Positions 12,101-54,181 of a DNA stretch of 64,000 nucleotides are shown piece after piece (position 1 is the first letter of the stretch; the number at the start of each line of letters is the position of its first letter). The position numbers and the translations under genes were made by a program. The notes under the pieces were generated by a model, which saw nothing but the letters and a program-made list of their open reading frames with translations, was not told the DNA's origin and did no database searches. Source of the DNA: Setoptus koraiensis (lineage: Eukaryota > Animalia > Arthropoda); assembly GCA_048013815.1 (NCBI GenBank), contig CM106586.1, positions 12,338,001-12,402,000 on the forward strand, in the 5' to 3' direction.

Positions 12101-14310
12101 ACGCTCGCTGACGGCAACTCGTTTTGAGAGACAACTGTCGATAAATGTTGTTGCTGTTTCAGTGTTTATAATTGTTTGCACCCAACGCTCAATTTGACAG
12201 AGGCCACATACAAACAGACGCTGGCATTGTTGTTGGGTCTCGCTGGCCGCCGTTGCCGTTGTTGTCGTTGCTGCTGTTGCTGTTGCCGTTGTTGTCGTTG
12301 CTGCTGTTGCTGTTGCTGTTGTTGCCGTTGTTGCGCCTGCCAGCACGATAATGCTTGCAATGATTTTAATTATTATCGGCTGTTGTTGCTGTTGTTGCTG
12401 TTGTCGCTGTCATTGTCGCCGTATAGCTGTATGGCTGTACGGCTGTATAACTGCACGACTGGCCAATGGTGGCGATATTTCCCTTTCGCTCGCTGGCCCG
12501 ATGCCAGCCGAATCAGCTGACAAATAAGCTGTCGTTGTTGTTGCTTGAATGAACGGTGCACGTGTGATTGACCTCAAGCCCACCAAACGTATGGGTCAGT
12601 TCGGGCCGACGGTCAGTTGTCGTGTGTCGTCAACAGTTTGCTGCTTGTTTGTTTGTTTGTTTGCTCGTTTGTTTGTTTGTTGCGTATTGTTTGTTGCGTA
12701 TTGTTTGTGGCTCGTCACAGGTTGGCTGCGTGACGCACGCCCGACTCACACTGTAATTTCTATCGACGATTCGCTGTCGACGATTGACCACTGGCTATCG
12801 TCAATTGCCGTCTGAACAGCGCTGCTTATTTGTACGTGTGTGCGTGTGTTAATTTGAATATTCAAATAATTGGTGAATGATTAGTGATGCAAGTCAGTTA
12901 GTGGGCAAGTGTGATTGGCGATGATGAAATTGAACTGTCCATTTGGGCTCTGTTTTGACTATTTTGACACACGGCGAGTGAGCAGTCGCTGTCAAATAAC
13001 ATTATTGTGACACGATCAGCTGACTATGAAACGAAAAGCAAACTGGTCACTGTTGCAGTTGTTGCTGTTGTTGTTGCAGTTGTTGCAGTTGTTGCTGTTG
13101 TTGTTCACTACTGACACACTCACTCACACGCATCAGACCAGCGAATGAACAGCAAAAATCAAAATAACAACAACAACAACTACACACACGCCCGATGGCA
13201 AGTGGGTGGTTCCACTGGCAACAAAGAAGACGCACACACACACACGGCCAGCAACTGCACCTGTCGTTGTTGTTGTCGCTGTTGTTGCTGTCGCCGTTGC
13301 TGTTGTTGCTGCTGCCGTTGCTGTTGTTGCTGTTGCCGGTGATGCAACGGCAGCAACAACAACAACAAGCTACAAGTGGCCAATGCAAATCTTTGCCTTC
13401 GCTCGTTTCAGTGCCCCCCCCCCTGCCCCGCCACACAAAACTCGACAGGCGGGGGGGGGGCACTTACACGGCAGACACACGCCGACAACAAGTTACGTAA
13501 TAGCAACAAGTGAGTGGCCAAAAAATGGCCACACGAGGCGCCATAGGCACCCGTTGATTTTGATGCAAATTTCAGCAGCAAACGGTGCGCCGGTCGGTGG
13601 CTACCTGTCAGTCACTGGCTGCTGCCGACCAAAACTGTTATTAGACCAATATTTGTGCTGCGTCCAGCCGACGACGGCGACGGGCTTGCTCGCTCAGCTG
13701 ATTCATTCGGATAATGGGGATAACTCAGATAGCGGATAATGGAGATAATTGACAATTGTGATAGCGGATAAATCAGTGCGGATAATTGCGTTATCATGCT
13801 GCACACTGAAGGCGCACGAGATTGCGCAAGACACCTGAGATTGTAAGCAGTTGTGTGCTCCAGTTGACAACTTTCGCTCGCGTGAGCCCAACTGTCGCGT
13901 AACTTGGCTTGCAACTGTCGACCAACAAGATAATTGCGCTTGGCTGTGCTGTATTTATCGGCGGCCATTATGCAACAAATATGCAAATTTCGGCCCGTCG
14001 TTATGCCGACCACCAGTGTCATGTTAAATTGGTACACAAGACAATGCATGATGCGACAGCGGCGACTTTGCTCTGGGCGCCACACAATTTGCGCGCAATT
14101 TGCGCACAATTTGTGATTTGTGTCAGGCGGTTGCAATTGTTGCGGCTCGCGAGCCATCTTTTCAATTTCGATTCATGCAACATTTATTTGTCTATTTATA
14201 GTTACGTAAACTGTCTCACTATGCATCTATCTATACAATTTATATTATCAGTAGTCAAGTTGATGCGATGTCGGCTGTGCGACTGGCCAATTGGCAATTA
14301 TGGCGCACAG

Positions 14311-14489
14311 TGTAACCATATTATGGGTTAGCTGAGTCTTTTATTTATTTTCGACTTACATCAAGTGAATACAATACTTGCTCTCCATCGCTCTCTCTTA
14401 TATACGCATGTTCGCACCTAGTCTCCGTCCTAGGACGGGACTCAATTCTGAGTACAATTTAAGTAAGCACATGCTCGTATGTGCTTATA
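14311..14489 (-). repeat. 3' LTR (179 bp)
   Basis: Differs from the 5' LTR at 7 positions by manual alignment (~96% identity). Its terminal TG on the minus strand is mutated to TA. A short purine run AGAGGGATA abuts it internally (weak PPT). Confidence 0.92.
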
Positions 14490-14527
14490 TATCCCTCTGG
14501 TTAATTGAGACTACGGGGGGAAGAGTT

Positions 14528-15409
14528 TCAGTCCCAATATTCCATTTCTTCGTCTGGGTAGGCTACTTCGGCTGGTACCCCATCATTGGGTTGCGGATCC
14601 GGGTCCTCTGGCCAGACAACTGGAGGCGGATCTGGGTCCTCTGGCCATACTACGGGAGGGGTCCATTGATTGGATGATTCGCCAGCTGAGTTGCTGGGTG
14701 TAACCGGTAGACACCTGTCTAGCCTATTATTATATATCATTGATACACCTTGGCTCCAATTTTGTTGCCGGTTATCTATGACGTTAACGTGGACTGTCCC
14801 CGATCCTCTGGTCATCTCTCTGAATTGCTGAGTTGGCTTCAATACTTTATGTTGTATGTACACCAGAGAAATGCGATTTGCATTTAAACCTGAAATCCTC
14901 GCTGCTTTTTCGTACAGCAATGCCACTGAATCTGTCGGTTGGTATCTAGCGGTTGCTGTTTGTTGTCCCTCAAAATCCAGTTTCACCGTTTGCGGTCTTT
15001 TATCAAAAACTTCTCTTGCCGGATTCGACAATAAACATTTTATGTCTGTGATAGTGCCTCTGGATATGCCTGAGCACTTCGGGAAACGTCGGCAATTGTC
15101 CAGGTGTCGGGTGATATTTCCCACAATCACATCGGTTGAACAGTACGGACAATTAAATTCCAGCGAAGCATGGATGTTCTTACTTGATAATCTCGGTGGT
15201 TTCAATGTGTTCAGGTTGAACGGAGCTTGGCAGAAACATCTTGAGTCATTCGCTAATATCATTTCGTAGCAATCTATGCAGTAGATTTGCTGGCATGAGT
15301 TCACAGTCACGTGTTCTTTGAAGTCCAATGCGACGCATTTACATATAACACAAATGTAGTTCTCCGCTATTTTCGGTAATTTGAAGCATTCTAACTCGAG
15401 GCTTGCCAT
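14528..15409 (-). CDS. Retroelement-borne RING finger / TRAF-type zinc finger / ubiquitin-like domain protein (293 aa)
   Basis: N-terminal CVIC...CQQIYCIDC...CFC (C3HC4-like with His replaced by Gln). Next is CPYC-x14-H-x3-C, resembling the RING+zf arrangement of TRAF/RNF41/PDZRN3 proteins. Then TATARYQPTDSVALLYEKAARISGLNANRISLVY...GTVHVNV, matching the ubiquitin-fold pattern, and an acidic tail with 2x PPVVWPEDPDP. Intronless and uninterrupted. Confidence 0.82.
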   Translation of the reverse strand: MASLELECFKLPKIAENYICVICKCVALDFKEHVTVNSCQQIYCIDCYEMILANDSRCFCQAPFNLNTLKPPRLSSKNIHASLEFNCPYCSTDVIVGNITRHLDNCRRFPKCSGISRGTITDIKCLLSNPAREVFDKRPQTVKLDFEGQQTATARYQPTDSVALLYEKAARISGLNANRISLVYIQHKVLKPTQQFREMTRGSGTVHVNVIDNRQQNWSQGVSMIYNNRLDRCLPVTPSNSAGESSNQWTPPVVWPEDPDPPPVVWPEDPDPQPNDGVPAEVAYPDEEMEYWD

Positions 15410-15737
15410 TGTTAATTAGATTCCTGGTTAATTAATTGGCTTAATAGGCTTTATTAGTTAAGTTGATTATTTAATATTCAACTGGTAGACGTATACTGTT
15501 GATCTTGGTAGGCCGATACCGGACCATACTTGCTTGTAGTGGCTCTTGCCACCTTTTGTTAGCAACATTTTCTCTGTTCTGTGCGTGGCATCGCACTTCC
15601 GGTGCACCCATTAGCACTCATGGTTATATCATAGGCTATCTCTCTGAGTTGCACCAGTTGCGACGCGTTCCACGTGTGGTGCGCGAGCGTGTGCGGTAGC
15701 ACACAAATATAAGCACTTCACATAATTGCCGCTAGGG

Positions 15738-16212
15738 CTATGCATGCGTCAGCATGCATAGATTTAAATATAATGACTCCTCCTATGCATGCGCTAGCAT
15801 GCATACGTGTACCGTGTGGGAATCTGTTGATACCTCCAGCCGCAGTTCAGGGAAAAACCGCTCGAGGTCGCTTTTTGTACACGCATTTTTCGTGCGTGAG
15901 ATCGAATGAGCAATCGAAAAACAAATCAACAAGAAAAAAAGAAGAAAAAACGTAAAATTTATCGAGACACCTCAACCTTTTCAGTGCTTTTTTAGGGTGA
16001 CGCCAGCACCCCTGGCGTCTTTTCTTTGAACTACGGCCGAAGGCATCGGCAGATTTCCACACGGTATATAAACATACACCTGTTGTTTCTTTCGCTATAT
16101 CTATTCAAATTCATGCTAATTCATCGTATCATCGAGGGGTCTGTATTTTCTCCTACAATCGTGCCCGAAATTCGATCGAATAGGGGCCCTATGCATGCGT
16201 TAGCATGCATAG
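15738..16212. promoter_or_regulatory. Three copies of palindrome CTATGCATGC-N4-GCATGCATAG inside the LTR element
   Basis: Copies at 15738-15761, 15783-15806 and 16189-16212. The arms are conserved and the 4-nt loops vary (GTCA, GCTA, GTTA). A regulatory role is inference. Confidence 0.55.
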
Positions 16213-16354
16213 GATACAGCGCCAGCTGTATCTATTCAAATACGTTTCGACGACGCTGTGTATGCGCCAGCGTACACAGGTATACCGTAGGTATACCTAA
16301 TTATTGGCGTTTACGCCGCTGTTCGTTTCGTTTCGTTCTTCTCCTGGCCGATGT

Positions 16355-17422
16355 CTAGAATTGGCTTCGCTTTCTACGCTTCTTCCTTTGTTGATTGGTA
16401 GGTCGTTCAGTTACAGCTTCATCCGCTTCTTCTTGCGTAACGTCTGTCTCTTCTAGCGAAACACTGCTTTCTGTAGTGTCTCGAGTAGGTTCAGGTGCGG
16501 CGATATCGTCGTCACCTCCGTTGTCCTCCTCAGCCTGCGAATTTTCTTGTAGGTTATCGATGAGAGGCACTTCCGGTGCCAAAGTATCATTTTCTTCTCT
16601 AACAAGATATCTTTCCATGCGTTCTACGTTGACAATTTGATGTTGTATTGGTCCTCTCAAATTAACCACTTCGTATTTGTTCGGGTTAACGAATTTCTTT
16701 GTTACCCTAAATGGTCCTTCTCTAATATAGTCGAATTTCTTTCCGACTAGAGTTCTTACCGGGATGGTCAAGAGAACTAGGTCGTTTACTTCGAAGCGGA
16801 TCTCTAGTCTACCGTCAGTGGTACGACTCAGGTTGCGCAGTTGGGACTTTCTTATAGCCCCTTGAATAACTTGGCGTATGGACTCAATCGTCTCATTCTC
16901 TTCGCCGCTTATAACTTCTCTTGTACCGATCAGTGTATCTACATCGATCGTTGGATCTTTGCCGAAGACAAGTTTGTACGAGGTTTGACCCGTCGTCTCA
17001 TTCACACTAGTATTGTACGCGAATGTGATGTCCCCAAGGTAAAGATGCCAGTCTTTCCTTTCGCTTTCTCCTAAGGCTGCAATACTTGCGCCTAGTATGC
17101 GGTGAAATCTCTCCGCTACTCCGTTCGTTTTCGGGTGATACGATGAAGTTCCTATTCGCCCTATCCCCTCTTTCTCGAAGAAGCTGTTTGCTTCTTCGCT
17201 CATGAAATTTGTTCCTCGGTCCGATAAAATAGTTCTCGGTATACCGAAGATCCGTAGGAAGTGCCTTTTCAGTTTCTTGCAGATGGTAGTTGTGTCGTGC
17301 TTCTTCAGAGGAACCAAGATCACCCATTTACTGAGGTGATCTACTATTGTCAGAACCCATTTAAGTCCCTTAGAGGAAGGTTTAACTTTACCCCATGTAT
17401 CTATCCCTACTAGGTTGAACAA
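16355..17422 (-). CDS. Gypsy-type integrase, catalytic core and C-terminus (N-terminal HHCC domain missing)
   Basis: DDE triad in GIDTWG, ILSDRGTNF and HPKTNGVAERF, plus a GPY/F motif (REGPFRV). The ORF starts at TTG right after an in-frame TAA. Confidence 0.9.
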   Translation of the reverse strand: MFNLVGIDTWGKVKPSSKGLKWVLTIVDHLSKWVILVPLKKHDTTTICKKLKRHFLRIFGIPRTILSDRGTNFMSEEANSFFEKEGIGRIGTSSYHPKTNGVAERFHRILGASIAALGESERKDWHLYLGDITFAYNTSVNETTGQTSYKLVFGKDPTIDVDTLIGTREVISGEENETIESIRQVIQGAIRKSQLRNLSRTTDGRLEIRFEVNDLVLLTIPVRTLVGKKFDYIREGPFRVTKKFVNPNKYEVVNLRGPIQHQIVNVERMERYLVREENDTLAPEVPLIDNLQENSQAEEDNGGDDDIAAPEPTRDTTESSVSLEETDVTQEEADEAVTERPTNQQRKKRRKRSQF

Positions 17423-17568
17423 ACCTTATGGTGCCTCTCTCCTCGTTCAGACCTGACTATATTAGTTGATCTTGAGTTATTGGGTTTACTTCGAGGCTCG
17501 TACTCGGCCTGGGTATATACTTCTTGAAGATTATTTTTTTGAAAATATCTACTACTCGTGATTCGTAT

Positions 17569-17580
17569 CCGTTGACGCCA
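17569..17580 (-). other. Putative primer-binding site TGGCGTCAACGG
   Basis: Begins with TGG (complement of tRNA CCA) 2 nt inside the 5' LTR. The GCCA end would fit a tRNA with a G discriminator such as Ser; the tRNA identity is not verified. Confidence 0.6.
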
Positions 17581-17582
17581 TA

Positions 17583-17761
17583 TGTAACCATATTAAGGGT
17601 TAGCTGAGTCTTTTATTTATTTTCGACTTACATCAATTGAATACAATACTTGCTCTCTATCGCTCTCTCTTATATACGCATGTTCGCACCTAGTCTCCGT
17701 CCTAAAACGGGACTCAATTCTGAGTACAATTTAAGTAAGCACATGCTTGTATGTGCTTACA
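17583..17761 (-). repeat. 5' LTR (179 bp), TG...CA termini
   Basis: TGTAAGCAC...TGGTTACA on the minus strand; paired with 14311-14489. Confidence 0.92.
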
Positions 17762-20700
17762 CACAGCCACAAACAATGGACAAGGCAACAAACAAAAATG
17801 CTAATCGACCCCAATACCTGTTGTGGCCCAATAGCCACAACAGCTGATCGATGTTACCGGCTAGTCAAGTGGAGCACAAGTTTCCATGGCGACCAAGCGT
17901 GTGGTTTGCACCATTCATGCGATGTGTCACTTTTGCTGCTGCTGCTGATGTTGTTGTTGTCGTGGATGTTGCTGTTGTCGTTGATGTTGCTGTTGTCGTT
18001 GATGTTGTTGTTGTTGTAATAACAACAACAACAGCAGCGAGCAGCGGCCATAAGTGTCACAGCCACCGTAAGGGCCCTCAAGCGACACTTTTTAAAGCTC
18101 GCCAAAGCCAGCCACTTTCAAGTGTCACACTTATCATGTGTCTCACTTGAGTGTTACGTCATGCGTACCGTTGCACACAATACTGGCAGTATTATACTGG
18201 CAGTCTTTTCAGACGCTTCAAATGCGTCTTGTGTCGTCGTGTCGTCAATGTATACCAATGAGACAAGCGCACATAAACACATGGAAATAGATCGATAGGC
18301 TGGCGAGATATAAACAGCAGCGACATTGACATTTGCACATTTGCTCAAAAAAGCCAGCAAGCCAGTGATGCAATAAGGCGAATAATACGAACACGGCCAA
18401 ACGAGCGCAAACTTTCCTCTTTGTTGTCCAGCTCACCTGTTTCTGGGCCGACTGTCTGGACACGGAGTCAGCTGTTGAGCGCATCGATTGTTGTTGTTGT
18501 TGTTGTTGGCGCTCTCGATTTCGATTTTCATTTCGATTTCGATTTCGTGTGCACATTGCTCACTTCATCAACAGTTTCATCAGCACCATCGTCAGCAACA
18601 TCGTCAGCAACATCGTCAGCAGCAGCAGCACCAGGGCAAACTTACGCAAACTTGCCAACTTCAACAAACTTACATCATGTCAGCTACATGACGTAAGCCA
18701 ATGTATGATGCAAGCCGCATGCAACAGACATGGCCAATGTGTCACAGAAAAACGAAACCATGTTTTGTTGTGTGATGCTTCGGCGATCTTGACAATTTTT
18801 GAGGTCACGCAATGTGCGCCAAGTGTTACATCATTTATAGTGGTGATATGTATTTTATAAACAGCTGACCGTCATGTAGTGTGTTGGTGTTGCGGTGGTT
18901 CGGCGCCAGTTTTGTTGGTGTCGCTGTTGCTGCTGGCCAATGTCACTGTTGCTGCTGGCCAATGTCACTGTTGCTGTTGCTGGCCAATGGTGGCCACTTT
19001 GGCCATCACAATACCGTATCGACCGATTGGCCGGTCACACACACACACATACTGTGTCATAATAAACATCATGTGTTACATGTGATATACATATGATGTA
19101 ACCACATTTAAAGAAACGTTACGTAACACACAGTCGGCTGGCACAGAGTTTCGCAACACGGAGTCTCGTAACACGGAGTCTCGTAACACAAAGTTTCGTA
19201 ACACGGAGTTACGTAACAGGTGACTTACTGTGTTGTGTGTCACAGTTGCTGTCATTGGTGTGGCCGTGCAAACAACAACAGCAACAACGACAGCAACAAC
19301 AACGGCGACCTGTGGCCTTGGGACACTGGCTGGCCGCACGCTACCTGTAACGGCACACAACCGACAATCGATACATTATTATGTAACTATGTAAACATTT
19401 TTCCCTGGCGGCCAACTAAGCGCTTGCAAGCCAGTTTGTGCCAGTGCGGCCGGCAACAGGTGAGCTGGCCAGCCGGCCAGCCGGCCAGTGAGACCACCAG
19501 CCAGGCAACCGCCAATTACATCGCTCTCAGTGGTGCAAATAACACTAACTATATGTTATTACTGCCCCTCACCTGTGCCAGCTTATCAGCTGACCGCTGT
19601 ACCGTTGGCTCGCGTCGGGTATTGGCCGCTCGCCAATGCCGGCGACTCTCGCCATTGGCGCTCGCTGCTGCCAGGCCGAGACGCTCGCCGATGGCCAGCC
19701 GATGGTCAGCCGATGGTCAGCCGACGGCCAGCTGATGGCCGGCTGATGGCCAGCCGATAGCCAGCTGACGGCCAGCGCATAGGCAACGGACAAATGCCAC
19801 GCTGTTGCCTGGATAAATCCGCCAAGACAGCTCAGACGACGACGACGACTAGAGCTGCAGTTTGAGTCGCTACAGGCACGCTCACAATGGCGAGGTTTTT
19901 GCGCACAAACGAATCTCACACTCGAGACTCGAGTCTCGAGTCGCCAATGTCGAGGCTTGCGCCGTCGTTTTTTCCAATGATATTCGCCAATGATATTCGC
20001 CAATGAAATGCATTCAATCGGAGCGCGCGAAAAGGCCAAAAGAAGAAGGAGAAGAGCGAGCCAAAAAGCACAATCGATCCGATGAGAACCGTGCCAGAGC
20101 CGCTCCGTCTCGGACTGTCGGACTGTGTCGACGGGCCGGCCAACTGGGCTAGCGGTCGAGCGGCGCTGCCTGTGGTCAAGATAAATAGTCAGCAAAAATT
20201 TAGTCGGCCGGCGCTATCTAAATATTTATCTTTGCGTCGCTGGCTGCCGTCGTACGGCACAGCACGGTGAGGTGTGACAGTGGCGTTGCCATAGAGAATT
20301 GCCAAAATCAATTCGGAAATTAAATTCGAGATTGATCAAAATCGCAAGCAGTCCCACTCACGGCAAGCAACAATTACCGGCGGTCGGTGGTTGTTGTCGT
20401 TGCTGTTGTTGTTGCTCGGTGCGTTTCCAAAATCAAAAATCAATCACGCCAATTCTCAATCGGGCTCCCTCCTCTGACCCTCGATAATCTCATATCTTCT
20501 GTAATAACTCATCCCTTTCTTTCCAATCGGCCGGCTTAACCAATCAAACACACACTTTATGGCGGACCGGTATTATAAGGCACGCACACACGCCCGATGA
20601 TTGATTTGGGCACCGCACATGACCTAATCAAACATTGGGCGGCCGCTCGGGCCAGCGGAAACGACAATCGCCGGCCAACCAATAGCCGGCCAACCAATAG

Positions 20701-21916
20701 CCGGCAATGATAACCGACGATAATAAGCCAGCAACAACAATAATAATTATGATGCGCATTTTAGGCGCCGGCGATGATTAGACAGGCTGGTTGGCCAGCT
20801 AACGGTATTCAAATGAACGCTGCCTCATGAATAGCGATGCGCCCATCGCAGTGGGCGACACAAACTTGCCATCCGTCCGCGATTGCTGCCATGGAGCTGC
20901 CAACGATTCGGCCGCTGAGTCTCTCTGAATCTCTGTCGATTTTTTTTTGAATTTATTTGAATTTTTCTGAATTTTTGTGAATCTTTGTGAATCTTTGTGA
21001 ATTCAAACTTTGCACCGAACGCTGCTGTTTCGGCGTAAGGCCGCCAGCAACGGGCAGAGGCAGGAAATGGACAAAAATAAACTAATTGATATGCAGATCA
21101 CGCTCGCAATGTTGCGCCAGATATTGTGGCTATTCATGGGTGAACTTTGTTTGTGGAAATAAAAACTTTGTGTATCATGTTGCTTTGTCAACAACTTTTG
21201 GAAATGTTGCACCGAGCACCCCGATCTGGTGACTTGTCGGCCTGCCCGACGGTCAGTGTCGGATGTGACCGGAAGCAAGTGTCAAACGGTGGCTGTTGGG
21301 CGTTAACTGCGTCAACTTGAGCCACAAATGGCGCCAGCCGTGAGCGCTGGTGAATTTGTTCAGAATTCACGACCGAAATGCCGCGAAAATGTTGTGAAAA
21401 TGTCGTTTCAAAGGGCCTTCGCCAGCAGCCAGCAACAACAGCAACAACAGCAACAACAGCAACAACAGCAACAACAGCAACAACAGCAACACCAGCAACA
21501 ACAGCGACAACAGCAACAACGGCAACAACAGCAACAGGTGCTCATGGCCGGTGTTTGAACAGACGCTCACATTTGAATAGTAGGTCAATCACACTCAAAC
21601 TCACACTCGGACGCACAGCGGTTGTGACGTGATCATCGTGGCCGGATGATTAATGATTACGACTAGTTGTTACTTTTTAATAATGATAATCTCTCAAAGC
21701 GCTCTATTGGCTCATAACGCCAACAAGTGCGATAGCTCACACCCGAAACTGCATGCTCAATCGATTATTAGATTGTGCCGAGCGGCCCACTGACCGAGCG
21801 CTTTGCTGCCGGCTGTCGATGTCGCTGTTGTTGTTGTCGCTGTTGTTGCTGTCGCTGTTGTTGTGATTATGGCCACGATGATGCCGATGAAAAATTGTAA
21901 CTTTCAACAGGTTTCC

Positions 21917-21954
<38 letters not shown>

Positions 21955-23292
21955 CGACAGCGGCAACAACAACCGCTGTCGATGCAACCCGCAACAATGC
22001 GACGGATAGACACAGTTATTAATGATTGCACATTAGCGCGCGAGCCGCACTATCAGCTGCAACTGTGCCGTCCAGAAAACCGAAATGGCGAGCAGTAAAT
22101 CGATAAAGGCAAATTATTTGACCATTCGAGCTGTTGAGCAAATCGACGACGACGACGAGCCGTTCCGATTGCAGCCAATGGAAATCTAATCAGATCAGGC
22201 CTGATTCGATTAGATTTCGTTGCTGTTGCTGCCGTCGGTTGTTGCTGTCGGTTGTTGCTGTCGGTTGCTGTTGTCGGTTGTTGCTGTTGTCGGTTGTTGC
22301 TGATGTCGGTTGTTGCTGTTGTCGGTGAATGGCGCTCGTTAGCGCCGGCAGAGAGAGTTGCATCAGCACTGTCCGAATGACCATTTTACACAGTCTACAT
22401 TTTTCCTTCTTTTTCTTCTTCCTTTTTGCTGCTTTTGTTGCCCGCCATTGCCCATGTTACATAATAATAATCGCTGTTAATACCGCTGTTAGTACCAATG
22501 GCAAGCCAACCAAATAGACTTATAACGCTATGTGTTATGATAAATAAAGTGAAGCTTGAAAGAGTGAAAGCGTCATGAATCTATTAACATTTAACAAAGA
22601 TTTACAACTGTTAGCTTGCAGAGCAAACACAGAGCACATGTTTCCCGTTTCCGGCTGCTCGTTTCATCAGCGGCAAATGCAACTTTTTTTGCCAACTATT
22701 TGCTTTCTTTTGATATTTGATAGATCTACATTTGAGACCTTTGATCTTTTTTTACCGTTTTCTTTTTCATCATTCGCAATCTTTATGCTGCTCACATTCA
22801 ATTTAAGTCACGTTCGTCAGATACCAACTTGCCGCAAATTGAATCACTGCTTCAGCTAGTTTGTCGCAATATTTGTATTAACATAATGCTGTCATTTGAT
22901 CGAACGAAATCGCACCATCCGATGTCGTGATAAATGTAACAAATTGACAGTTCACACCATAAATGGTTCGTATACGTTCATTATGCTCAAGTTATCCGAT
23001 CCTCATGTCCACGTTGAAGGGTCGTCATGCGATTTGCACGCTAATGATAATATTGTAACTACAGTAATCATGCTGCCAAATCGACTTTTAAAATTTTTTC
23101 TATAGTTGATGCTTGTGCCACATTATCATCCACCGATGTTAACTTCTAGGCGAAATTCGCATCTTGATATAATTGATCACCATCAATGGGTCTCGCAGGG
23201 ATCAACAATCCCTGTGAGACGAGGATATTTTATTTTCACCAGACCGCCAACCAGAAAGCCAACTCGCTTATCTGGATGGGAATGGCAGTTTT

Positions 23293-30074: not shown

Positions 30075-33000
30075 TCAGACGATGCGCAAGAATCCGCCCT
30101 TATTGTACCAATCCATACTGGCCTGCATTGTTGCGACCTCGTGCTCGCTGGTTGTGGCGCGATTATGATTGTCGTGATGCTGATGCAACGGATTGAGTAT
30201 ATTGCTGTTGCTCTGTTGATGCGATTGGTTCATGGGGCCCAAATGATGTTCCATGTGATGATGCTGATTGTGCAAATTGTGCGATTGGTGATGGTGCTGC
30301 GACGCAGACTGGTGGTGCAAATGATGATGATGAGGATGATGTGAATTCAGGTGATGATGATAAGCCAAATGGTGATTGGTTTGTTGGTTGCCGGCTGGCG
30401 CCGATGCGTCGGTGTGGGTCGCTCGCGCCAACAGAGACGATTGCTGTTGTTGCTGTTCCGTATAATTGAGATGTTGTTGTTGTTGTTGTTGTTGTTGCTG
30501 TTGTTCCTCTAGGCCGAGCTGAAAATTGGCCGCTTGCTGCTGATAGGCGTTCGACGAGGTCGCGTTCGACGCGTTCGAAGACGAGTGCTGCGCGTACTGA
30601 GTGACCAGCGCCGAGTGGATCTGCTGCTGACCACTCAGCGATCCGTTGTCGGCCTGTTGTGGCGGCTGCTGCTGGCTCAGGTGATGCTGTTGCTGGTGAC
30701 TGTTGTGGCTCAGGTGATGTTGCGGCTGCTGATTAATGCCCAGAATGCCCGCGCTCAACCCGTTGCTCGCGCTCGACGAGCGGTAATGCACCGCGGGCTT
30801 GCCGGCCTGGTGATGATGGTGCGTGTTGAAGGCGCGCGCCGCTACCGCGGCCGCGGCGGCCGCCGCCGCCACCGTTGCGCTGACCGCCGACGACACCGCG
30901 CTTGCATTTTGTCCGGCGCCGCCCGAACAGTGGCTCAGCGGAGACGCGCCCAGCGAGTTGCCCGAGTGGCTCACCACTAGTCTGTGCGGCGACAGCGACG
31001 ACGGCGACGGAGTGGTCAGTCCGTCGCCGCTGCTGCTTGCGTAATCCGCCGCTGCAGCGTTGGTTGCACAATCGTTGCCGGTCCGACGCTGCGAAGAGCC
31101 GCCGGTCAGCTGATTTCTGTTGTGGTGCAAATCACTTGTTGTTGCTGCTTGCTGGCCGCATTGATCGCCGGCGTCGCCCGGCTGCCCGTTGGCAGCGGAA
31201 TCCGCGCCGGCCTTGTCCGAATTGGCGACGCCGAATTGCGAGTAAAGGTTGTGCGTCATGGCCATGGGCTGATAATACGCTTGCTGCTGGCTGAACTGCT
31301 GCTGCTGCTGTTGCTGATGATAAGCGTCTTGCTGGTGATTGAACAGCGCCGAGTCCGTCGGGCAAAACGCGGCCGGGCCGGTCGAGTTGCCGTTGCCCGA
31401 CAGTTGGTACTGCTGCTGCTGAACATTGTGGTGGTGCGCGCTGACGCCGTAACTGGCCGACAGGTGCTGCTGGTCCGAGTCGTCCGAGCCGGACGATTGA
31501 ACGGCCTTGTGATTGTGATGGCGATACCCGCCGACGCTGTTGTTGTTGTTGTTGTTGTCCGTGCTAGAGCAAAGCTGACCGCTGTCCGAGTTGCTGTTGC
31601 GACTGGCCAACAACCTTATGTCGTCCGATTGTCCAGTTAGCGAGTTATAAAGCTGCTGTTGCTGATTGTGATGGTTCGATGGCGCGAAACAGGCCTCATT
31701 TGTGTTTCTGTCCACGGGGTTGTTGTTGTTGTTGTTGTTGTCGCCGCTTGTTGTTGCCGAACTTGTGGTTGTTGTTGTCGTGCTCGGTGTTGCGCAATAA
31801 TTGTTGCTGCCGGCACCCATCGATTGAGCCGAAGCTGCCGAGCTTCTGCTCGACAGGCACGCGCCAGCCGTACCTGTCAAAGTGGCGCTCATTGGCTGAT
31901 TGTGATTTGTTGTTGATTGCATCATTTGTTGATGATTTGTCGCGCCACTATAAGCACCGGCTGGGCCGTGGCTAGACGCCGTCAAACCGGCCAGCTTGTT
32001 ACTGTTGTTGCCAATATTGCCCAATTGCTTAGTATTGTTTGCGGACGCGCCGGGGTGCGCACTCACGGCCGCATGATGATGATACATGCTCCAAATTAGC
32101 GACGACGAGGCGCACGCACCCAGCAAGGGGGGCGACGCCAGCGCCTTGTGAAGTTGTTTCTCCTGTTTCCGGTATTTGGCGCGCCTGTTCTGGAACCACA
32201 CCTATAATGTGTTTTTGTCATTTGCATATTATTATCATTTGCATATTAGTACATCATCACAACAGCGACTCAAATTTTCATGTCATTGTCATGGTCATTA
32301 TCATTGACAATCGTCGCCGGTTGTCCGATCGGCGTGACAGCGATGGCCGGAGCAAGCGAAAATCGATCGCTAGGTGCGCAATTTGTGGTTGGTTGCCGCA
32401 CAAACAAAAGTCAGTCGCTCACGGACAACGCACAAACGCCGGGCGCCCCGACAAGGGAGCAGGACTTTTGGCGCTCATCTCGCGTCACCGGATGCCGATC
32501 ACTGTTTGCATGCAGTCGCTATACTCACCTGTATCCGTGCCTCGTTCAACTTGGTCAGTCGAGCCAGCTCCTCGCGGCAATAAATGTCGGGATAGTGGCT
32601 CTTGGCGAAGGCCGTCTCCAGTTCTTGCAGTTGCTCCTGAGTGAACGTCGTTCTGTGGCGTCGGCGGGCCGTCGTCGGTGCATGATTAGTTTTGATTATA
32701 GACGACGTGTTGTTGTTGCCGTTGTTGTTGCCGTTGTTGTTGTTGCCGTTGTTGTTGTTGTGGTGCGCTGAAACAACACTATTGCTGTTTGTTGTGAGAA
32801 AGTTGTCTGAAATTGCATTCAATTGCTGCTTGCCATGGAAAACGAGCGGGGGTGGAGCGGGGCGATTGGCTTGAGCTACGTTGTTGTTGTTGTTGTCGCC
32901 GTTGTTGCTGTTGTTGCCGTTGTTGTTGTTGTTGCCATTGTTGCTGTTGTTGCTGTTGTTGCCGCTGTTGTTGCTGTTGACGCTGGGCAGACCCACGTGA

Positions 33001-34178
33001 GCCCTGCCGTTCGAGCCGTGCAGTTGATGCTGCTGCTGCTGCGAGTGATGATGGGCCACCACGTCCTGATAATGGCTTGCGCTGCCATATAATCCGTTCA
33101 GCGCGGCCTTGCTGGCCGCTGAACTGGCCAACGACGAGCTTGGCAACTTTTGTTTGCCACTTGTCGTGCCGCTGCCGCCGCTCTGCTGTCTTCTGACGCC
33201 GCTGTGGCCAGCCAGCGAGCCTTGTCTCGAGTTGGGGCCCTTCGTTTGAGACGTGGCAGTGCCAGCTTCCGGTTGCGGTGCACCAGCTGCTGTGCTGCTG
33301 GCTGGCAACGATGGTGTTTTGGCTTGATGACCGGCGATTTGAGCCACCATTGAGGATGGCGAAGATGACGAAGACGATGACGACGACGACGAGGATGACG
33401 ACGTTGACGACGACGACGATTTGGCGGTTGAATGTTGCATGAAGCTGTGATTACTTTTATAAGCTTTGTGATGCAACGACGAGCTTGCGGCGCTTGTCGA
33501 CGATGACGAACTCGATGACGATGTGGACGACGACGAGCAACGAGATAGGCGAGATTCCTTTGTTTGCTGACCAGTGGCGACTGTTGTTGCCGTTGTTGTT
33601 GCTGTTGTTGCTGCTGTTGTTGTTGCTGTTGTTGTTGCTGTTGTTGTTGCTGTTGTTGTTGCTGTTGTTGTTGCTGTTGTTATTGTTGTTATAGGCGGCC
33701 CGTTACTATTGCTGAATGGAGCATCAGTGATGCAGTTGGCGGTTATCGCGCCATTAGTCGTGTTACTATTATAGGTCTTGGTGTTTGTTTGCTGTGCTGC
33801 CGCTGTTGTTGCTGTTGTTACTGTTGTCGTTGCTGTTGCGTCACTTGCGCCACTTGTGTCCGACGATCGACTCTCTGGTCTGTCGGCGACCACGATTTGT
33901 CCACGCTGCAATTGCAGTTTATCGCTGCCAGCAGTTGTTGTGTCAATTTGTGTTGTATTATTCGCTGATTTGTGTGATTGGTGTGAAATATCCGTCGACT
34001 TTTGAGCCTCCTCTTGCTGCTGCTGTCTGCTGGTCAGCTGACAAGTTGACTGATTGTTATCGGCTCGTGGTTGGTCGCACCCGGTAGCAGTGGCCAGTTT
34101 AGTGCTGGCGTCAGCTGATTGGGCTTCGATGACACTATGACAGTTGCTGGGTGATTCACTAGGCACGCCAGCAATCAT
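30075..34178 (-). CDS. PROP1: PRD-class Q50 homeodomain protein, Prop1/unc-42 family, ~1258 aa; join(34178..32529,32201..30075)
   Basis: Homeodomain [46 protein letters not shown]|[15 protein letters not shown] matches remembered unc-42/CG32532-type sequences. A 327-bp GTGAGT...TATAG intron sits at the conserved Q46/V47 position. An in-frame stop lies upstream of ATG 34178. Confidence 0.88.
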
Positions 34179-44563: not shown

Positions 44564-44738
44564 ATGGACTATTGAACGATTGTGATGATAATACAACCAG
44601 GTGATGAATCTATTGATCTTGCCAGACAATCGACAACAAAACAATTCTTAGAGATAATGATCATTTAATACAATTCATGAAAACAATTTTTCATCGTGAT
44701 AATATCTAATAGCACACATGTTAGTTGTTCGATAAATA

Positions 44739-46160
44739 AATACAACAATATGGCGAGTGTTTGGCGTTATTTCGAAGTTTCATTCGACTACGTCTATCGT
44801 GACACGGGCGAGAGCCCTTCACATCAGGCTAATCAATCAGTGGTGGGTATCGAATCTGACAGCAACAAAAAGATCCATGTTATTCTTTTGTTGACAATAG
44901 ACCATCAATAGTAATCCGTGAACAGTTTGGCAAGTAATGTTGTAATAATAATAATAATAACGATAATGATAATTATAATGAATTTAATAGAAAGCAAACA
45001 CACAGAAGCGATACGGGAATTCTCAGTTATTTGCTCTTTCGCATCATATGGTACTGTGTGTGATTGTTGGGTATCTCAACTACCCACGCGCAAAATTCTC
45101 ATTTTGAACTGAATCATGTGATTTCTGCTTGGTCACAAATGCAACGACTGGTAATGATGCTGTAACAATGTTTGCAATTTATCTGTGATTTTTAATTAGC
45201 AAATTCCATTTATCACTGTAGAATCACTCATTAAACATTAACATAGGACTTATAACATCTTCAAGTAATCTAGGCAACACTACTACTTAATTGCAGGATA
45301 ACAAGATATACAATGGGACCAAAAGCAATCTTACTTAGCTATTTCCTAGTGTCTGTGTGCGTTTTACCTTTGGCTAAAGTAAGTTCCACCATAATTGTTA
45401 TGACAAATCAAAAACAAAAATTAACCTAACATGTCAACCAGTAAAGATAATAATCACTCTTGTCATATCAAAACGAAGTGTGCCACGGAGCTCGTGACTC
45501 ATGAAGTTACTTTTGATATCTCTATTGATAATGTACCCGCGGGCACAATAAGAATGGGACTGTTTGGAAACAAAGCCCCACGAACAGTGGAAAATTTTGT
45601 TGCGTTCGCCGGTCAAGGTGTTCAAGGTAGACGGTATGAAGGATCAATATTCCATCGTGTTATAAAGGATTTCATGATTCAGGGTGGCGATGTAATTAAC
45701 GGCGATGGTACGGGATCGATATCGAAATTTGGAACTCAATTTAAAGACGAACTGCCGTCCTATCGCCATTCCGTGCCAGGCCTCCTATCGATGGCCAATT
45801 CCGGACCAGACACAAACGGGTCACAATTTTTCATCACCACAGTTTTGACGCCATGGTTGAACAATAAGCATGTGGTATTCGGTAAAGTGTTGGACAATCA
45901 GAGTATGCAAACTGTGAAAAAGATAGAAAATGCTCAAGTTGACGAATCTAGCCGACCACTGTCGGTTGTCGCCATATCTAAATCTAGCGTGCATCAATTG
46001 TCGTCCAATGAGCAAACGCGAGTTGACATTGGTGCCCAATAATGAGGGGTATCTCGCAATCATGACTTGGAATCAGTTGATATTTCTAACAACTTAATCG
46101 CATTATAAACACATATTATATATGAGCAAGACATGACTCTAACCTAATGAACTATGCCCT
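44739..46160. repeat. Segmental duplication copy 1 (intergenic block X + cyclophilin + 3' flank)
   Basis: Near-identical to 54182-55604 (offset 9444). Block X is also present at 50041-50599. Confidence 0.93.
45313..46042 (+). CDS. PPIB: Secreted cyclophilin-type PPIase (cyclophilin B-like), 209 aa; join(45313..45378,45479..46042)
   Basis: Signal-peptide exon MGPKAILLSYFLVSVCVLPLAK|GTAAGT; the only plausible phase-0 acceptor is AAG|TGT at 45478 (inferred). Active-site motifs FHRVIKDFMIQGGD, SMANSGPDTNGSQFFIT and WLNNKHVVFGKV are intact. Confidence 0.9.
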
Positions 46161-46508
46161 AATTTCGATTGTTTATTTATGTGTACTTATCTCGCAGCGC
46201 GTCGTACTTGTTCATACGTTCATTCTCGTCGTTCGTCATTTGAAAACGGATAGCTAAATAACGATGGGCCAATAAAAAGGTCAAACTTATCTGATCGAAA
46301 ACAACAAAGTGAGTCGAAGAATATGATATTCTTCACTTCTGTGTATCCGAGATTCGCTTCAGCTGATAGAGGAAACACAAACATATCAGGATCACAATGG
46401 CATCCTATAATTATATGAATCCGAACAACAGTATCGATGCGGGAATTGTGATCTATGCACTGTCCGTCAAATAAGATCTGCATCGAATCGGCAACAAAAA
46501 ATTAATGA

Positions 46509-47669
46509 TCACCAATCATTTTCCCCTAAATGGCGTTTCTTAAAATCTTCAATCCAATCTTTCAACATAGTCACTCTTACGTATCTAAAAGCCTTAATAC
46601 GTATCCCATTAACTGCGCTTATAACACCTTGGACTTCCCACTTATTCTTATATGTCGGACCATTCCTGACATAAAAGGCTGGTCCACCCGAATCGCCCGG
46701 ACCGCCTCCAATGAAACACGTCTTATTATTCGGATTAAATGTACAGAAATCCCGAGAGTGGTTATAAAAAACTGATTCGATAATATTGCTGCATGTTTCC
46801 TCATCGGATATTGTTGCAACAGCAGCTCTCAATTTATTTTCTGGCCAGAGAGGTTGGTTCTCGTAGTCTCCCCATCCAGCTATAGTTAGGTTTGTGCCCG
46901 GTTTTAAATGGCCAGAATTGCCATCAACTCTTTCTGCTGGCGGCAAGCAAGCAGGTCTAACATAATCTGTCCATTCAAATGGGCGGTCGAGCTTAATCAA
47001 GGCAGCATCAACGTCTTCTCCTGGATGTCGTTCATTGTATAACTCAACATATTCATTCTCTCTCACTTGCTGCTTTGCAGTAAGTGGCGCATCCAGATCG
47101 AATATGCCTGCATATATTTGCAGGGTCCCTTTCTCTGCCTTTGGTTCACGGTCGAAACAATGGTCAGCAGACAGAATGATTTGCTTGTGTATAATTGTGC
47201 CGCCACATCGATGCCGCGATTGATTTCTATGACTTCCGATTGACACTATCCACGGAATGTCCCCTTCAGATGTCACCCCACCTCCGATGATTCTTGGTTT
47301 GATTTGAGCAGCGGTCGACTTATTCGGCAACCATCTATTGCCACCAGGGTTTGGATTGATGCCACATTCTACATGATCATGGGAGGGTTTCCCGGCTCTC
47401 GGTTTATACACAATCGGGTTTGCACGTCCCTTCGTCCGCCTCGAATTGGATTTTGATTCCTCTCCACTCGCCCCAGTAGCAACATGTGATTTAATGTTCC
47501 TTTTCGCGTGGGACAATTCATAATCATGGCCAGATTGCGAACTGTCCGTTTGCCTCCGCTGTCCCAAAGCACTCACTTCCAACTTTTCATCTGGCACCAT
47601 TGCCAACATCGTCGCTAAAACACATATTGCAGCATAAAAAAGTGTTTGAACTTGTTTGGAAGCCATCAT
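46509..47669 (-). CDS. Secreted trypsin-fold (S1A) serine protease, intronless, catalytic triad intact (386 aa)
   Basis: Signal peptide, R|IIGG activation site, SADHC (His), DAALIKL (Asp), GDSGGP (Ser). Confidence 0.92.
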   Translation of the reverse strand: MMASKQVQTLFYAAICVLATMLAMVPDEKLEVSALGQRRQTDSSQSGHDYELSHAKRNIKSHVATGASGEESKSNSRRTKGRANPIVYKPRAGKPSHDHVECGINPNPGGNRWLPNKSTAAQIKPRIIGGGVTSEGDIPWIVSIGSHRNQSRHRCGGTIIHKQIILSADHCFDREPKAEKGTLQIYAGIFDLDAPLTAKQQVRENEYVELYNERHPGEDVDAALIKLDRPFEWTDYVRPACLPPAERVDGNSGHLKPGTNLTIAGWGDYENQPLWPENKLRAAVATISDEETCSNIIESVFYNHSRDFCTFNPNNKTCFIGGGPGDSGGPAFYVRNGPTYKNKWEVQGVISAVNGIRIKAFRYVRVTMLKDWIEDFKKRHLGENDW

Positions 47670-48002
47670 TTAGATTTCTCAAGCTTTCTTCCCCTCAAGA
47701 CAGCCTGTTTCGCCGATATATACATATGCAAATAGTTAGAAAATATCAATCGACTTGATCGTTATTCTTGATACGATAAATAACTAGAATGGTTTCTTTA
47801 TAGTCGCGCAAGCATGTCGACACAAATGTTAGATAGCATACAGAGATCGCATGTTTGTGGATTCATTGATGAAAGATCAATTTTCGCAAAATAGGCAAGA
47901 CTGTCTCTAAAGATGATATCAAATATCACGTTAATAGTTTAATCGGTTGGAAAAATCCCCTGACAGCCTCTGTCAGTCTTACTGTCTACTGTCGTACTGA
48001 TA

Positions 48003-48148
48003 GAAGAAACACAAACATCAAGATCATAATGGCATCCTATAATTATATGAATCCGAACAACAGTATCGATGCAGGCATTGTGATCTACACTATGTCCATC
48101 AAATAATATCTGCATCGTATCGGCAACAAAAATTAATGATCACCAATT
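48003..48148. repeat. Orphan third copy of the protease 3'-flank block (Y)
   Basis: Matches ~46370-46510 and ~51372-51512, with no protease ORF attached. Confidence 0.75.
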
Positions 48149-48446
48149 ATTTATCGTATGAATGTAGCATCGTATTCATTTAGTCATCGACAATATTGAC
48201 TAATAAAGGAACGATTCATGAATCAACGCGTTGATTTTACAAGTACGCAGGTTCTTATAATATTGTTGGCTGAAGTTAAATTAAACTTCTGATAGAAACA
48301 AGAGGCCAGGATGTAGATTAAGCGCGAAAACTCTGAGTACAAGTTTGGTGAAGTAGGAATCCCCAAAAATGCAAATAGAGTTGTCGAATAAGATAGGTTT
48401 TAGAAAAAAAAAATATTCAAAGAAAATATCGTAATTATAATGAACT

Positions 48447-49945
48447 TTATTTAGATTGGTCAGCCATCATTGAAACTTTGATTTGTGGCTTGGCTACCTG
48501 GTCCAATGATATTCGTTTACCATTGATATAAAAGTCCTTGAATTGCTTTATGTTGATTCTATTGTATGAGATGGACTCTTTGGATTTCCTGAAATTTACT
48601 TTGATATTATCCATCTTTGGCTCTATTATGGTGAAAATATCTCTACTGCTAGGTGAGTTTTGAGCAGATAAGTTGTGAATTGTCACCACTGTGAATGAAA
48701 AATCCTTATCGATAGCTATAAAAGTAAGATACATGGCTTGATTATAATTTATGGTGAATAGAAGCTTGATATGTAGAATGTTAATACTAACGGGACCTTC
48801 ACCAATAACGTTGCATGTGCTATGGTCGGTCGGTTGAGGAGTATTTTTTTCGTTGACAAGTTCTCTGATACTAGTTCTTCTTAGAACTACCGAAGTCACT
48901 TTGCGCAAACGTTGCTCATCGACAATTATGTCTTTTTCGATTTGTAATACGTTTGCAAGAGTGTCCACATCTTTCTTGTATCGTCTCGATGATTTTTTAG
49001 CGTTTTTCGTCAAGTCGGTCAAAGTAAGATTGATTTGCTTCAAATAGTCCTGCAGAGATTCAAGTAGCTCTTTTGGTTGATTCCAATTTGGCTCGATATC
49101 TGATGCTTCTTCCAGAAGATCAACAGCCAATTGAAAGTTTTGCATATAAACTAAAACTGTTGCATAATTAAATAAGAAATCCGATTGTTCTTGTATTGGT
49201 TTTGTTGAATTATTCGTGCTGGTCGACTTATCGTCGGAATGTTCGCTTGTCTCCTCGATTGGTTCCTCCTTAACCTGTGAATTTTCTGTTGAAATGACTT
49301 TCTCAAAAGCTGACCTTGACATTCTAATCAGCGAATCATCAACGCATTCCGAAGCAAAGAAGAGACACATGTAAGCTTTGGCTAGGTTGTAGTAGCTGAG
49401 CGGATCTTTTAGGTCTAGCTTAAGTGCCTCTTTAGACAATTCTAAACTTTTTAGCAATCCAGCTAATCTGGCCTCCGGTGAATTGACAGGTTTTTGGCGT
49501 ATACAAGCGGACAAGTTTCTGAGAACAACTCTATTGGGTTTATCACAATTTTTTAAAGCGCTTTCCAAACAACCGATAGCTCCATCGAAGTCGCTCTTCT
49601 TCTGATAGCACTCCGCTAGCTCTATCCAAGACTCGATGAGGTTAGGATTAAGTTTGATTGATTTTGTTAATAGATCGAAGGCACCTTGATTGTATTTGTC
49701 GTCTTTGTTGAGCAAACGACCTGTACGAGAATGTAATTGTTATTATTACCACTATTTTTATAATTACTGTTCGGATTAAAACTGAGTGTATGAGAGAATT
49801 CAAGAAGAATATGATGTATGATGTATTTGCTGTAAATTTCTCGATATAACTCACCTTTTTGCATCAGCTCATAAGACTTATCTTCCAAAGGGTTAGTCTT
49901 GGTTTGAGCCTCAGCTGGTCGCTCGGAACTGATTCGTTCCGTCAT
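48447..49945 (-). CDS. TTC5: Tetratricopeptide repeat protein 5 (TTC5), ~454 aa; join(49945..49855,49720..48447)
   Basis: KG|RLLN...LLTKSIKLNPNLIESWIELAECYQKK, NRVVLRNLSACIRQ, DFLFNYAT and EPNWNQP follow TTC5 TPR motifs. The C-terminal OB-like region (FTFIAID...VTIHNL...INGK) is present. Phase-1 GTGAGT...TACAG intron. Confidence 0.87.
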
Positions 49946-50040
49946 ATTCTCGAGATATTGTTTTATTTCTCTTCAGCCTTAGATTGACATAATAAGCTTA
50001 ATATTAGTTTTCGACGGTAGTATCGAAACACTTGATAGTC

Positions 50041-50599
50041 GAATACAGCAATATGGAGAGTGCTTGGCGTTATTTCGCAGCTTCAACCAATTCGACTACG
50101 TCTATCGTGACATGTGCGAGAGCCCTTCACATCAGACCAATCAATCAGTGGTGGGTATCGAATCTGACAGCAACAAAAAGATCCATGTTATTCTTTTGTT
50201 GACAATAGACCATCAATAGTAATCCGTGAACAGTTTGGCAAGTAATGTTGTAATAATAATAAGAATAACGATAATGATAATTATAATGAATTTAATAGAA
50301 AGCAAACACACAGAAGCGATACGGGAATTCTCAGTTATTTGCTCTTTCGCATCATATGGTACTGTGTGTGATTGTTGGGTATCTCAACTACCCACGCGCA
50401 AAATTCTCATTTTGAACTGAATCATGTGATTTCTGCTTGGTCACAAATGCAACGACTGGTAATGATGCTGTAACAATGTTTGCAATTTATCTGTGATTTT
50501 TAATTAGCTAATTTCATTTATCGATTCTTTTCATGTAGAATCACTCATTAAACATCAACATAGGACTTATAACATCTTCAAATAATCTAGGCAACACTA
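50041..50599. repeat. Second copy of intergenic block X
   Basis: Near-identical to 44739-45282 and 54182-54726; gives the repeated 64-aa spurious ORFs at 44918, 50226 and 54362. Confidence 0.9.
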
Positions 50600-50603
50600 G
50601 GTA

Positions 50604-50654
50604 CGTCAATTGTCGTCCAATGAGCAAAAGCGAGTTGACATTGGTGCCCAATAA
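50604..50654 (+). pseudogene. Cyclophilin 3'-end remnant (rest of the gene deleted)
   Basis: CGTCAATTGTCGTCCAATGAGCAAAAGCGAGTTGACATTGGTGCCCAATAA matches the last ~16 codons of the cyclophilin and is fused to block X at a CTA microhomology. Confidence 0.85.
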
Positions 50655-51511
50655 TGCGAAGTATCTCGCAAACATGACTTGGAATCAGTTGATATTTCTA
50701 ACAACTTAATCGCAATGTAAACACATATTATATATGAGAAATGGCACCAACTAATAGACTATGCCCTAATTTCGATTGTTTATCTATGTGTACTTATCTC
50801 GCAGCGCGTCGTAGTTAATCATACGTTCATTCTCGTCGTTCGTCATTTGAACACGGGTAGCTAAGTAATGATGGGCCAATAGAAAGGTCAAACTTATTTG
50901 ATCGAAAACAACAAAGTGAGTCGAAGAATATGATATTTTTCACTTCTGTGTATCTTTGCCTGCCGAGATACTTGAGTCTTATCATAAATCGGTGGATAGA
51001 AAATTTCATGCCACCAATCATCGGTAACTATGCGGCTAAAGAGTTACCGTCTCGTTGCTGGATCCAATTGATGGAGAAAATTGAGAGACAAGAATCACTG
51101 TACGTGTGAATAATCATTGAAATGAAATGAATGTGAAAAATCTGGGCACGAGCTGCGAATCAAAATCCGAGCCGGTGCTAGAGAATGCTAGAACTCACGA
51201 AGAACGATTGCGTATCATCGAATTGTCTTGTTTATGGTCGTTGTTGGTCAAGTTAGAACAAAAAAAATCATAGATGGGCAAAATGATGTTGTCTATCGAA
51301 CTATTGCTTTATTCGTACTATTGCTGCTGTTGCTGAAAGTTGAAGCGAATCGGAGATTCGCTTCAACTCATAGAAGAAACACAAACGTAACAGGATCATA
51401 ATGGGATCCTATAATTATATGAATCTGAACAGCAGCATCGATGCAGGCATTGTGATCTACACACTGTCCATCATATAATATCTGCATCATATCGGCAACA
51501 AGAATTAATTA

Positions 51512-53687: not shown

Positions 53688-53931
53688 TGTTTGAGGTGAC
53701 CAAATGAAATGATGAAAGAGGCCCAGATTGGTAGAGTTTCGTTGGAAGGATCACAGAGTATCCTGACAGAATATTCCATCTGTTGCTGGGATCGATTGGT
53801 GCAAGTTTCGAAAATGCCTATCCCCATCAATCCATGTCTACTCTTATCATTCGATCGACCAGCCATCAGGAGGACAGAAACGTGTTGATCGATAAGAACC
53901 AATCGTACCAATTTGGCCGCTTATTTTTGTT

Positions 53932-54125: not shown

Positions 54126-54181
54126 GGACATAATAAGCTTAATGTTAGTTTTCGATGGTAGTATCAAAACATTTGATAGTC

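Follow-up and report, generated by a model that had tools for sequence, protein, structure and literature searches.

A dead Ty3/gypsy-type element of Setoptus koraiensis carries an open reading frame for a RING-like, zinc-finger and predicted ubiquitin-like protein

A stretch of 64,000 nt from Setoptus koraiensis (contig CM106586.1, positions 12,338,001 to 12,402,000; hereafter the window) contains a truncated long terminal repeat (LTR) retroelement. Between its integrase and its 3′ LTR lies an uninterrupted open reading frame (ORF) of 293 codons, and the locus raises the question of what this ORF encodes and whether it belongs to the element that carries it. An initial annotation, made from the sequence without database searches, had proposed a fusion of a RING finger, a second zinc finger and a ubiquitin-like segment, sitting where other elements hold an envelope gene. 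The reading that we favour, with moderate confidence, is that the ORF is an accessory gene borne by a lineage of Ty3/gypsy-type elements, that its product resembles a ubiquitin ligase (E3), and that the copy in the window is dead and non-autonomous. An LTR retroelement with an accessory ORF is an element of a known kind, but the architecture of this protein is unusual, and an accessory gene combining RING, zinc finger and ubiquitin-like domain appears to be undescribed for Ty3/gypsy-type elements. LTR retroelements have few accessory genes, and every one understood to date (env, sORF2) has altered thinking on how these elements spread.

Results

Anatomy of the element

Window positions 14311-17761 (3451 nt) hold a real minus-strand LTR element, as the initial annotation had delimited it. 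Its parts, in window coordinates, are as follows.

14306-14310, unstranded: target-site duplication, left copy, CACAG; an identical 5-mer stands directly outside both LTRs
14311-14489, minus: 3′ LTR, 179 nt; direct repeat of 17583-17761
14490-14527, minus: stretch of 38 nt from the ORF stop to the 3′ LTR, with a short purine-rich, polypurine-tract-like run abutting the LTR (read from the sequence)
14528-15409, minus: accessory ORF, 293 aa plus stop, without breaks, between integrase and 3′ LTR
15410-16354, minus: non-coding spacer, 945 nt, without a long open frame
16355-17422, minus: pol remnant, integrase catalytic core and C-terminal part, 355 open codons; matches to Pfam rve and Ty3 Gag-Pol
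17423-17582, minus: leader, 160 nt; two bases past the 5′ LTR stands a TGG that resembles a primer-binding site; gag coding gone
17583-17761, minus: 5′ LTR, 179 nt; direct repeat of 14311-14489
17762-17766, unstranded: target-site duplication, right copy, the same 5-mer as the left copy

The two LTRs have TG..CA-type ends and differ at seven positions without an indel (96% identical, Kimura two-parameter distance 0.040). The chance of finding CACAG on both flanks is approximately 1 in 1024. Together with the integrase remnant, the LTR pair and the duplication bear out the anatomy and strand first proposed, and also the slot of the ORF between integrase and 3′ LTR. No third LTR copy was found within the 64-kb window, nor was there a tRNA gene in it against which the primer-binding site could be checked, and a Rfam scan gave no match inside the element. 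Flanking host ORFs had no Pfam match. Dense CAG/CAA-type triplet repeat tracts were observed on both sides of the insertion (12200-13350, 17900-18030, 21400-22000) and elsewhere in the window.

The integrase remnant matched Pfam rve (7e-12), and its best solved relative was Ty3 Gag-Pol 7q5b (1e-24, residues 1179-1449), with retroviral integrases at 1e-12. It contains no stop and no visible frameshift, it matches 7q5b and Pfam rve in a single stretch each, and it aligns to its closest relative, P0012, in one block. A chromodomain was not reported in the Pfam scan. Judged from the integrase alone, the element is assigned to the Ty3/gypsy kind. The pol gene has undergone at least one deletion on its 5′ side, with the loss of protease, reverse transcriptase, RNase H and the integrase N-terminal zinc domain, and gag is gone as well. 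Since merely 160 nt lie between the 5′ LTR and the integrase core, there is no room for gag, protease, reverse transcriptase or RNase H, whose loss had been read correctly at the outset. With gag gone and pol truncated, the copy is therefore non-autonomous and dead. The 293 open codons are far beyond chance: the longest open stretch in shuffles of the internal region averaged 94 codons, and 293 was reached in 0/2000.

Domains of the ORF product

As a single sequence, the ORF returned nothing significant from Pfam, NCBIfam or a word-indexed protein search. A phmmer search of the PDB gave at best the RAD18 UBZ finger (E 0.55) and RNF125 (E 2.3), and single-sequence AlphaFold reached a predicted local distance difference test score (pLDDT) of 35. 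Because these single-sequence searches gave nothing usable, the domain calls are supported only in combination with relatives. Nine such relatives were recovered (see below), and the window ORF aligned with them forms a family profile of 10 rows, termed A2. Four regions were delimited in the ORF.

15215-15367, minus: RING-like cross-brace domain, aa 15-65; putative ligands C20, C23, H33, C39, C44, C47, C58 and C60
15074-15166, minus: RING-adjacent C2HC zinc finger, aa 82-112; C87, C90, H102 and C106, spaced C-x2-C-x11-H-x3-C
14768-14995, minus: ubiquitin-like (beta-grasp) domain, aa 139-214, from an AlphaFold (AF2) model and Foldseek; no C-terminal Gly-Gly
14531-14767, minus: disordered proline-rich acidic tail, aa 215-293; isoelectric point 4.1, with 15 Pro, 15 Asp plus Glu and 5 Trp

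Searched against the PDB, the A2 profile matched the RAG1 N-terminal region (8.7e-10, profile positions 15-134), RNF125 (1.7e-8), BRCA1 (7.8e-8), RNF4 (9.2e-8) and TRAF6 (2.4e-7), and more weakly the RING domains of RING2, PCGF5 and RBBP6. The matches to RAG1, RNF125 and TRAF6 reach through the C2HC finger. AF2 run with the A2 alignment modelled the N-terminal 110 residues at pLDDT 85-95, and in Foldseek the model matched the RAG1 dimerisation domain (1rmd) with a template modelling (TM) score of 0.72 over 109 columns. All 12 putative zinc ligands are invariant in each A2 row that covers them (8/8 for the finger ligands). Ile22 is kept in seven of eight rows, at the position that usually contacts the ubiquitin-conjugating enzyme (E2); RING E3s carry an E2-contact Ile or Val at the equivalent position. 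On these profile matches, the N-terminal domain is RING-like, with a variant order of its putative ligands. The RING-like finger of the initial annotation was therefore recovered through family-profile matches to solved RING domains, and not from the single sequence. Its C2HC finger, described there as of TRAF/RNF41 type, was upheld in type and in its spacing directly after the RING, with matches to RAG1, RNF125 and TRAF6, but RNF41 is not among the matches listed. As a separate observation, the RING and zinc-finger region at the RAG1 N-terminus is the best solved relative of the family, slightly above RNF125, BRCA1 and TRAF6.

Residues 139-214 were modelled from the same ten rows in beta-beta-alpha-beta-beta-beta order at pLDDT 71-88. 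Foldseek aligned this segment to ubiquitin, SUMO1, ISG15 and FAT10 over 74-77 columns (TM 0.75-0.86, root-mean-square deviation 1.6-2.4). The A2 profile matches in the PDB are confined to the N-terminal module, with none over the ubiquitin-like domain. A ubiquitin-like fold at aa 139-214 is thus supported by predicted structure, and it is by this route, with no sequence-profile match, that the segment of the initial annotation was found again. The ORF contains no Gly-Gly dipeptide, and the segment would therefore be an integral domain, not a conjugatable modifier.

The linker (residues 113-136) and most of the tail (216-293) are modelled as disordered. Within the tail, a 33-nt tandem duplication (14593-14658) doubles an 11-residue unit, which, with the isoelectric point of 4.1, agrees with the acidic repeat tail described earlier. 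The Trp adjoining the C-terminus is invariant in all nine rows that reach it (9/9), always in an acidic context, and looks like a short docking motif.

The ORF occupies the sense position flanked by pol and the 3′ LTR, which is the slot of LTR retrotransposons that bear additional ORFs (aORFs) (PMC7264820). The suggestion that this is the env slot of errantiviruses held for position only. No membrane segment is present in the ORF (maximum 19-residue hydropathy 1.14), and no envelope-like fold occurs among the BFVD matches listed, which are domain-level viral ubiquitins and giant-virus TRAF-like proteins. These two results rule out that the ORF product is an Env.

Relatives of the ORF and of the integrase

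The exhaustive HMMER search, made over 1.84 billion representatives, gave 11 matches, nine of them true relatives. Five are full-length (P0002, P0007, P0008, P0009 and P0010; 266-277 aa, 19-35% identity) and colinear with the ORF from Met1 to the Trp next to the C-terminus, and four are fragments (P0001, P0003, P0004 and P0006). An alignment-based word search added no further family members. Every one of the nine is an unnamed singleton on a Logan or ENA contig of 0.9-6.1 kb, with none from an annotated proteome, and no close cellular RING parent was found among the 1.84 billion representatives.

The other two matches, P0005 (3336 aa) and P0011 (653 aa), suggested a likeness of aa 134-179 to cadherins. 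This was rejected as an artefact: a short motif, foreign to the family, was summed over seven repeats of bacterial-type cadherin-repeat proteins. Both matches are a caution on repeat-summed E-values.

Mean pairwise identity is 0.29-0.38 in the domains as against 0.15-0.21 in linker and tail. Conservation concentrated in the folded domains, together with ORF ends that persist although identity is down to 19-35%, speaks for constraint over the long term on the family as aligned here. Judging from these alignments, the ORF belongs to a real, small and rare family of proteins with a conserved variant order of RING ligands. No named family or paper was found for a RING, zinc finger and ubiquitin-like architecture, in keeping with the earlier remark that no named lineage with it was recognised, and literature searches found no RING or ubiquitin-like gene in LTR elements.

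The fragments P0001 (N-terminal) and P0004 (C-terminal) derive from one relative that is 45-70% identical; both come from a contig of 1287 nt, and the split suggests the decay expected of a repeat. The closest relative of the integrase among 5.8 billion clusters was P0012, 51% identical over the C-terminal half. Like the ORF-family fragment P0006, P0012 is a Logan singleton from a contig of 6112 nt. If the two contigs are one, as their equal size suggests, this would link the ORF family to the integrase lineage, albeit circumstantially. We infer that the ORF is a member of the element lineage, which these data partly show.

Substitutions since insertion

At an LTR divergence of 4%, approximately 18 substitutions are expected in the ORF since insertion. 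A stop would arise from 4.6% of the possible substitutions, giving a neutral chance of 0.44 that no new stop appeared; for the equally open integrase remnant the figure is 0.47. Because the neutral chance is so high, the openness of the ORF says nothing on selection here, and the argument that it is intact and hence selected is ruled out. The GC content at third codon positions does not discriminate either, since the ORF, at 0.46, is level with the integrase remnant, at 0.44, and falls inside the host range in the window (0.38-0.56). The initial annotation had offered selection or a recent insertion as the meaning of the intact frame. The neutral estimate removes the first hint, and with LTRs 4% apart the insertion is not very recent.

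Structure of the spacer

The spacer between integrase and ORF holds three near-perfect palindromes of 24 nt (15738-15761, 15783-15806 and 16189-16212), where none is expected by chance, and a degenerate fourth copy (16256-16279). Moreover, inverted arms of 59 nt at 15810-15868 and 16008-16066 form a long hairpin, and as RNA the spacer folds far better than its shuffles (z-score -8.8). Its small ORFs had no Pfam match. Possible identities of the spacer are a nested hairpin element, an internal promoter, or a structure for RNA transport or packaging.

Discussion

A possible E3-like accessory protein

In the reading that we favour, the gene would encode a soluble protein of four parts: a RING-like domain, a tightly attached C2HC finger, a flexible linker followed by a non-conjugatable ubiquitin-like domain, and an acidic tail with Trp. 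A charged E2, from the ubiquitin or a ubiquitin-like pathway, would be brought in by the RING and its finger, whilst partner proteins would be bound through the ubiquitin-like domain and the Trp-bearing acidic tail. Acting as an E3-like ligase or adaptor, the whole might then modify proteins of the host or of the element, from which the element's active relatives would profit. If a retroelement lineage does possess a RING/ubiquitin-like protein, this would be the first sign that such elements exploit the host ubiquitin/SUMO system as viruses do; that system is central to transposon silencing.

Several points weigh against this interpretation. The ORF is known from sequence alone. In all rows the usual His after the third Cys of the RING is missing and a conserved His stands before the third Cys instead; the ligand spacing varies, the last Cys pair of the window copy being separated by one residue, and the Pfam RING gathering score was reached by none of the ten family members. 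Likewise, a Pfam ubiquitin match was obtained in 0/10, and the ubiquitin-like fold depends on a model built from a 10-row alignment (pLDDT 71-88). The evidence consists of one dead copy and of relatives at protein level, and that P0006 and P0012 share a contig is deduced from equal size alone. The spacer of 945 nt that separates pol from the ORF is out of the ordinary, and it is the main argument that the ORF may have been acquired later. Lastly, this is a dead copy, and neutral evolution could have left its ORF intact.

Much of what troubles the RING would be accommodated if the gene did belong to the lineage but its product were not a ligase. The RING-like module would then be structural or protein-binding, and the protein a non-catalytic adaptor or decoy working through its ubiquitin-like domain and acidic Trp tail. 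Its possible tasks would be occupying the host's receptors for ubiquitin or SUMO, or escorting proteins of the element. The non-canonical ligand order and the unreached Pfam threshold fit such a role, as does the lack, in the aligned rows, of a conserved basic residue directly following the last Cys. With its acidic context, the invariant Trp at the C-terminus resembles a docking motif, and the RAG1 N-terminal region, the best solved relative, has its main known role in dimerisation and regulation. However, RING domains of many proven E3s are matched by the profile at 1e-8 to 1e-7, and an Ile of the E2-contact type is conserved. We consider a non-ligase role unlikely, but worth keeping in view.

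The spacer bears more directly on a second alternative, in which this copy or a small sub-family took up a host RING/ubiquitin-like gene, spacer included, in a one-off or recent transduction, so that the ORF is irrelevant to the biology of the element. The 945 nt of structured non-coding sequence between pol and ORF are atypical, capture in sense orientation is an outcome of retroviral-type transduction (PMC7264820), and the relatives are known at protein level. This explanation nevertheless meets three difficulties. No close cellular homologue was found among the 1.84 billion representatives searched, which yielded as relatives nine singletons without names, several being fragmentary; no poly-A or untranslated-region remnant is present, with the ORF stop only 38 nt from the LTR; and the nearest integrase relative and an ORF-family fragment are probably on one contig. 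It seems to us rather improbable.

That the ORF is a functionless relic of a decaying, repeat-borne family, its frame open here by chance, is the least credible alternative and very improbable: the neutral chance of 0.44, the death of the copy and the four fragments among nine relatives would all suit it, but five full-length relatives at 19-35% identity keep start, end, 12 zinc ligands and fold core, which is unexpected without long-term purifying selection.

A bolder extension of the E3-like reading is that an E3 gene of its own, with RING, zinc finger and ubiquitin/SUMO-like part, serves an animal Ty3/gypsy lineage as a counter-defence, turning the host ubiquitin/SUMO machinery on silencing or restriction factors. 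We regard this as doubtful and improbable as matters stand; if true, it would be the retrotransposon counterpart of the RING and adaptor proteins by which large DNA viruses and lentiviruses disarm host restriction.

Comparison with known systems

The element shares with the errantiviruses of insects (gypsy, ZAM) and other env-carrying metazoan Ty3/gypsy elements (PMC13524379, PMC3383448) its LTRs, an integrase like that of Ty3 and, on the sense strand, a third ORF that lies after pol and before the 3′ LTR. However, the window ORF lacks a signal peptide and a membrane segment and gave no match to an envelope-like fold, encoding instead a soluble zinc-finger/ubiquitin-like protein, and a long non-coding spacer parts it from pol. 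An eLife survey of envelope-carrying Ty3/gypsy elements mentions neither RING nor ubiquitin.

Other element-borne genes in addition to gag and pol, missing from host gene sets and some of them with the slot and orientation seen here, are sORF1/sORF2 of the Drosophila MDG1 group (PMC11952523) and the sense aORFs of plants (PMC7264820). The MDG1-group genes are the nearest insect concept, but their proteins are unrelated to that of the window ORF; sORF2 is a short transmembrane fusogen-like protein (PMC11952523). Plant aORFs are env-like or of unknown fold, and the criterion for an aORF is its presence in all or most copies of an element family, not in one alone (PMC7264820). Unlike the window ORF, neither group has been described as RING or ubiquitin-like.

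Amongst cellular proteins, the likeness is closest to RAG1 (1rmd), RNF125 and TRAF6: these gave the best profile matches, 1rmd also the fold match, and in all of them the finger follows directly after the RING with the C-x2-C-x11-H-x3-C spacing. They differ from the window protein in that its His ligand comes before the third Cys, and in that a ubiquitin-like domain follows rather than TRAF-C/MATH, UIM or a recombinase core. E3 ligases with an integral ubiquitin-like domain include RING1/PCGF (RING and C-terminal RAWUL), Parkin, UHRF1 and RBBP6. RING1/PCGF resemble the window protein in having a RING and then a ubiquitin-like domain in one chain. However, no sequence relation beyond the RING is detectable to any of these ligases, the window protein is much smaller, no RAWUL structure was among the top 50 fold matches, and neither Parkin nor UHRF1 came up as a match.

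Virus RING proteins that redirect host ubiquitin/SUMO pathways include ICP0 of herpesvirus and IE2, PE38 and CG30 of baculovirus. The parallel, a mobile or viral genome with a RING protein of its own, is one of functional analogy only, and none of the four is a named match among the BFVD matches listed.

Other features of the window

Elsewhere in the window, a homeodomain-bearing exon (32499-34178) adjoins a GC-rich open frame of 708 aa without a Pfam match (30075-32201), both lying on the minus strand within 30075-34178. Genes resembling Vps54/syndetin, TTC5 and trypsin are also present. A tandem segmental duplication of approximately 5 kb occupies window positions 44700-56000. It holds paired ORFs of 203 aa on the plus strand (45431-46042 and 54875-55486), which appear by eye to be of cyclophilin type, without a Pfam scan, as well as two trypsin-like genes (46509-47669 and 51512-52663) and a TTC5-like ORF (48447-49715), all three on the minus strand.

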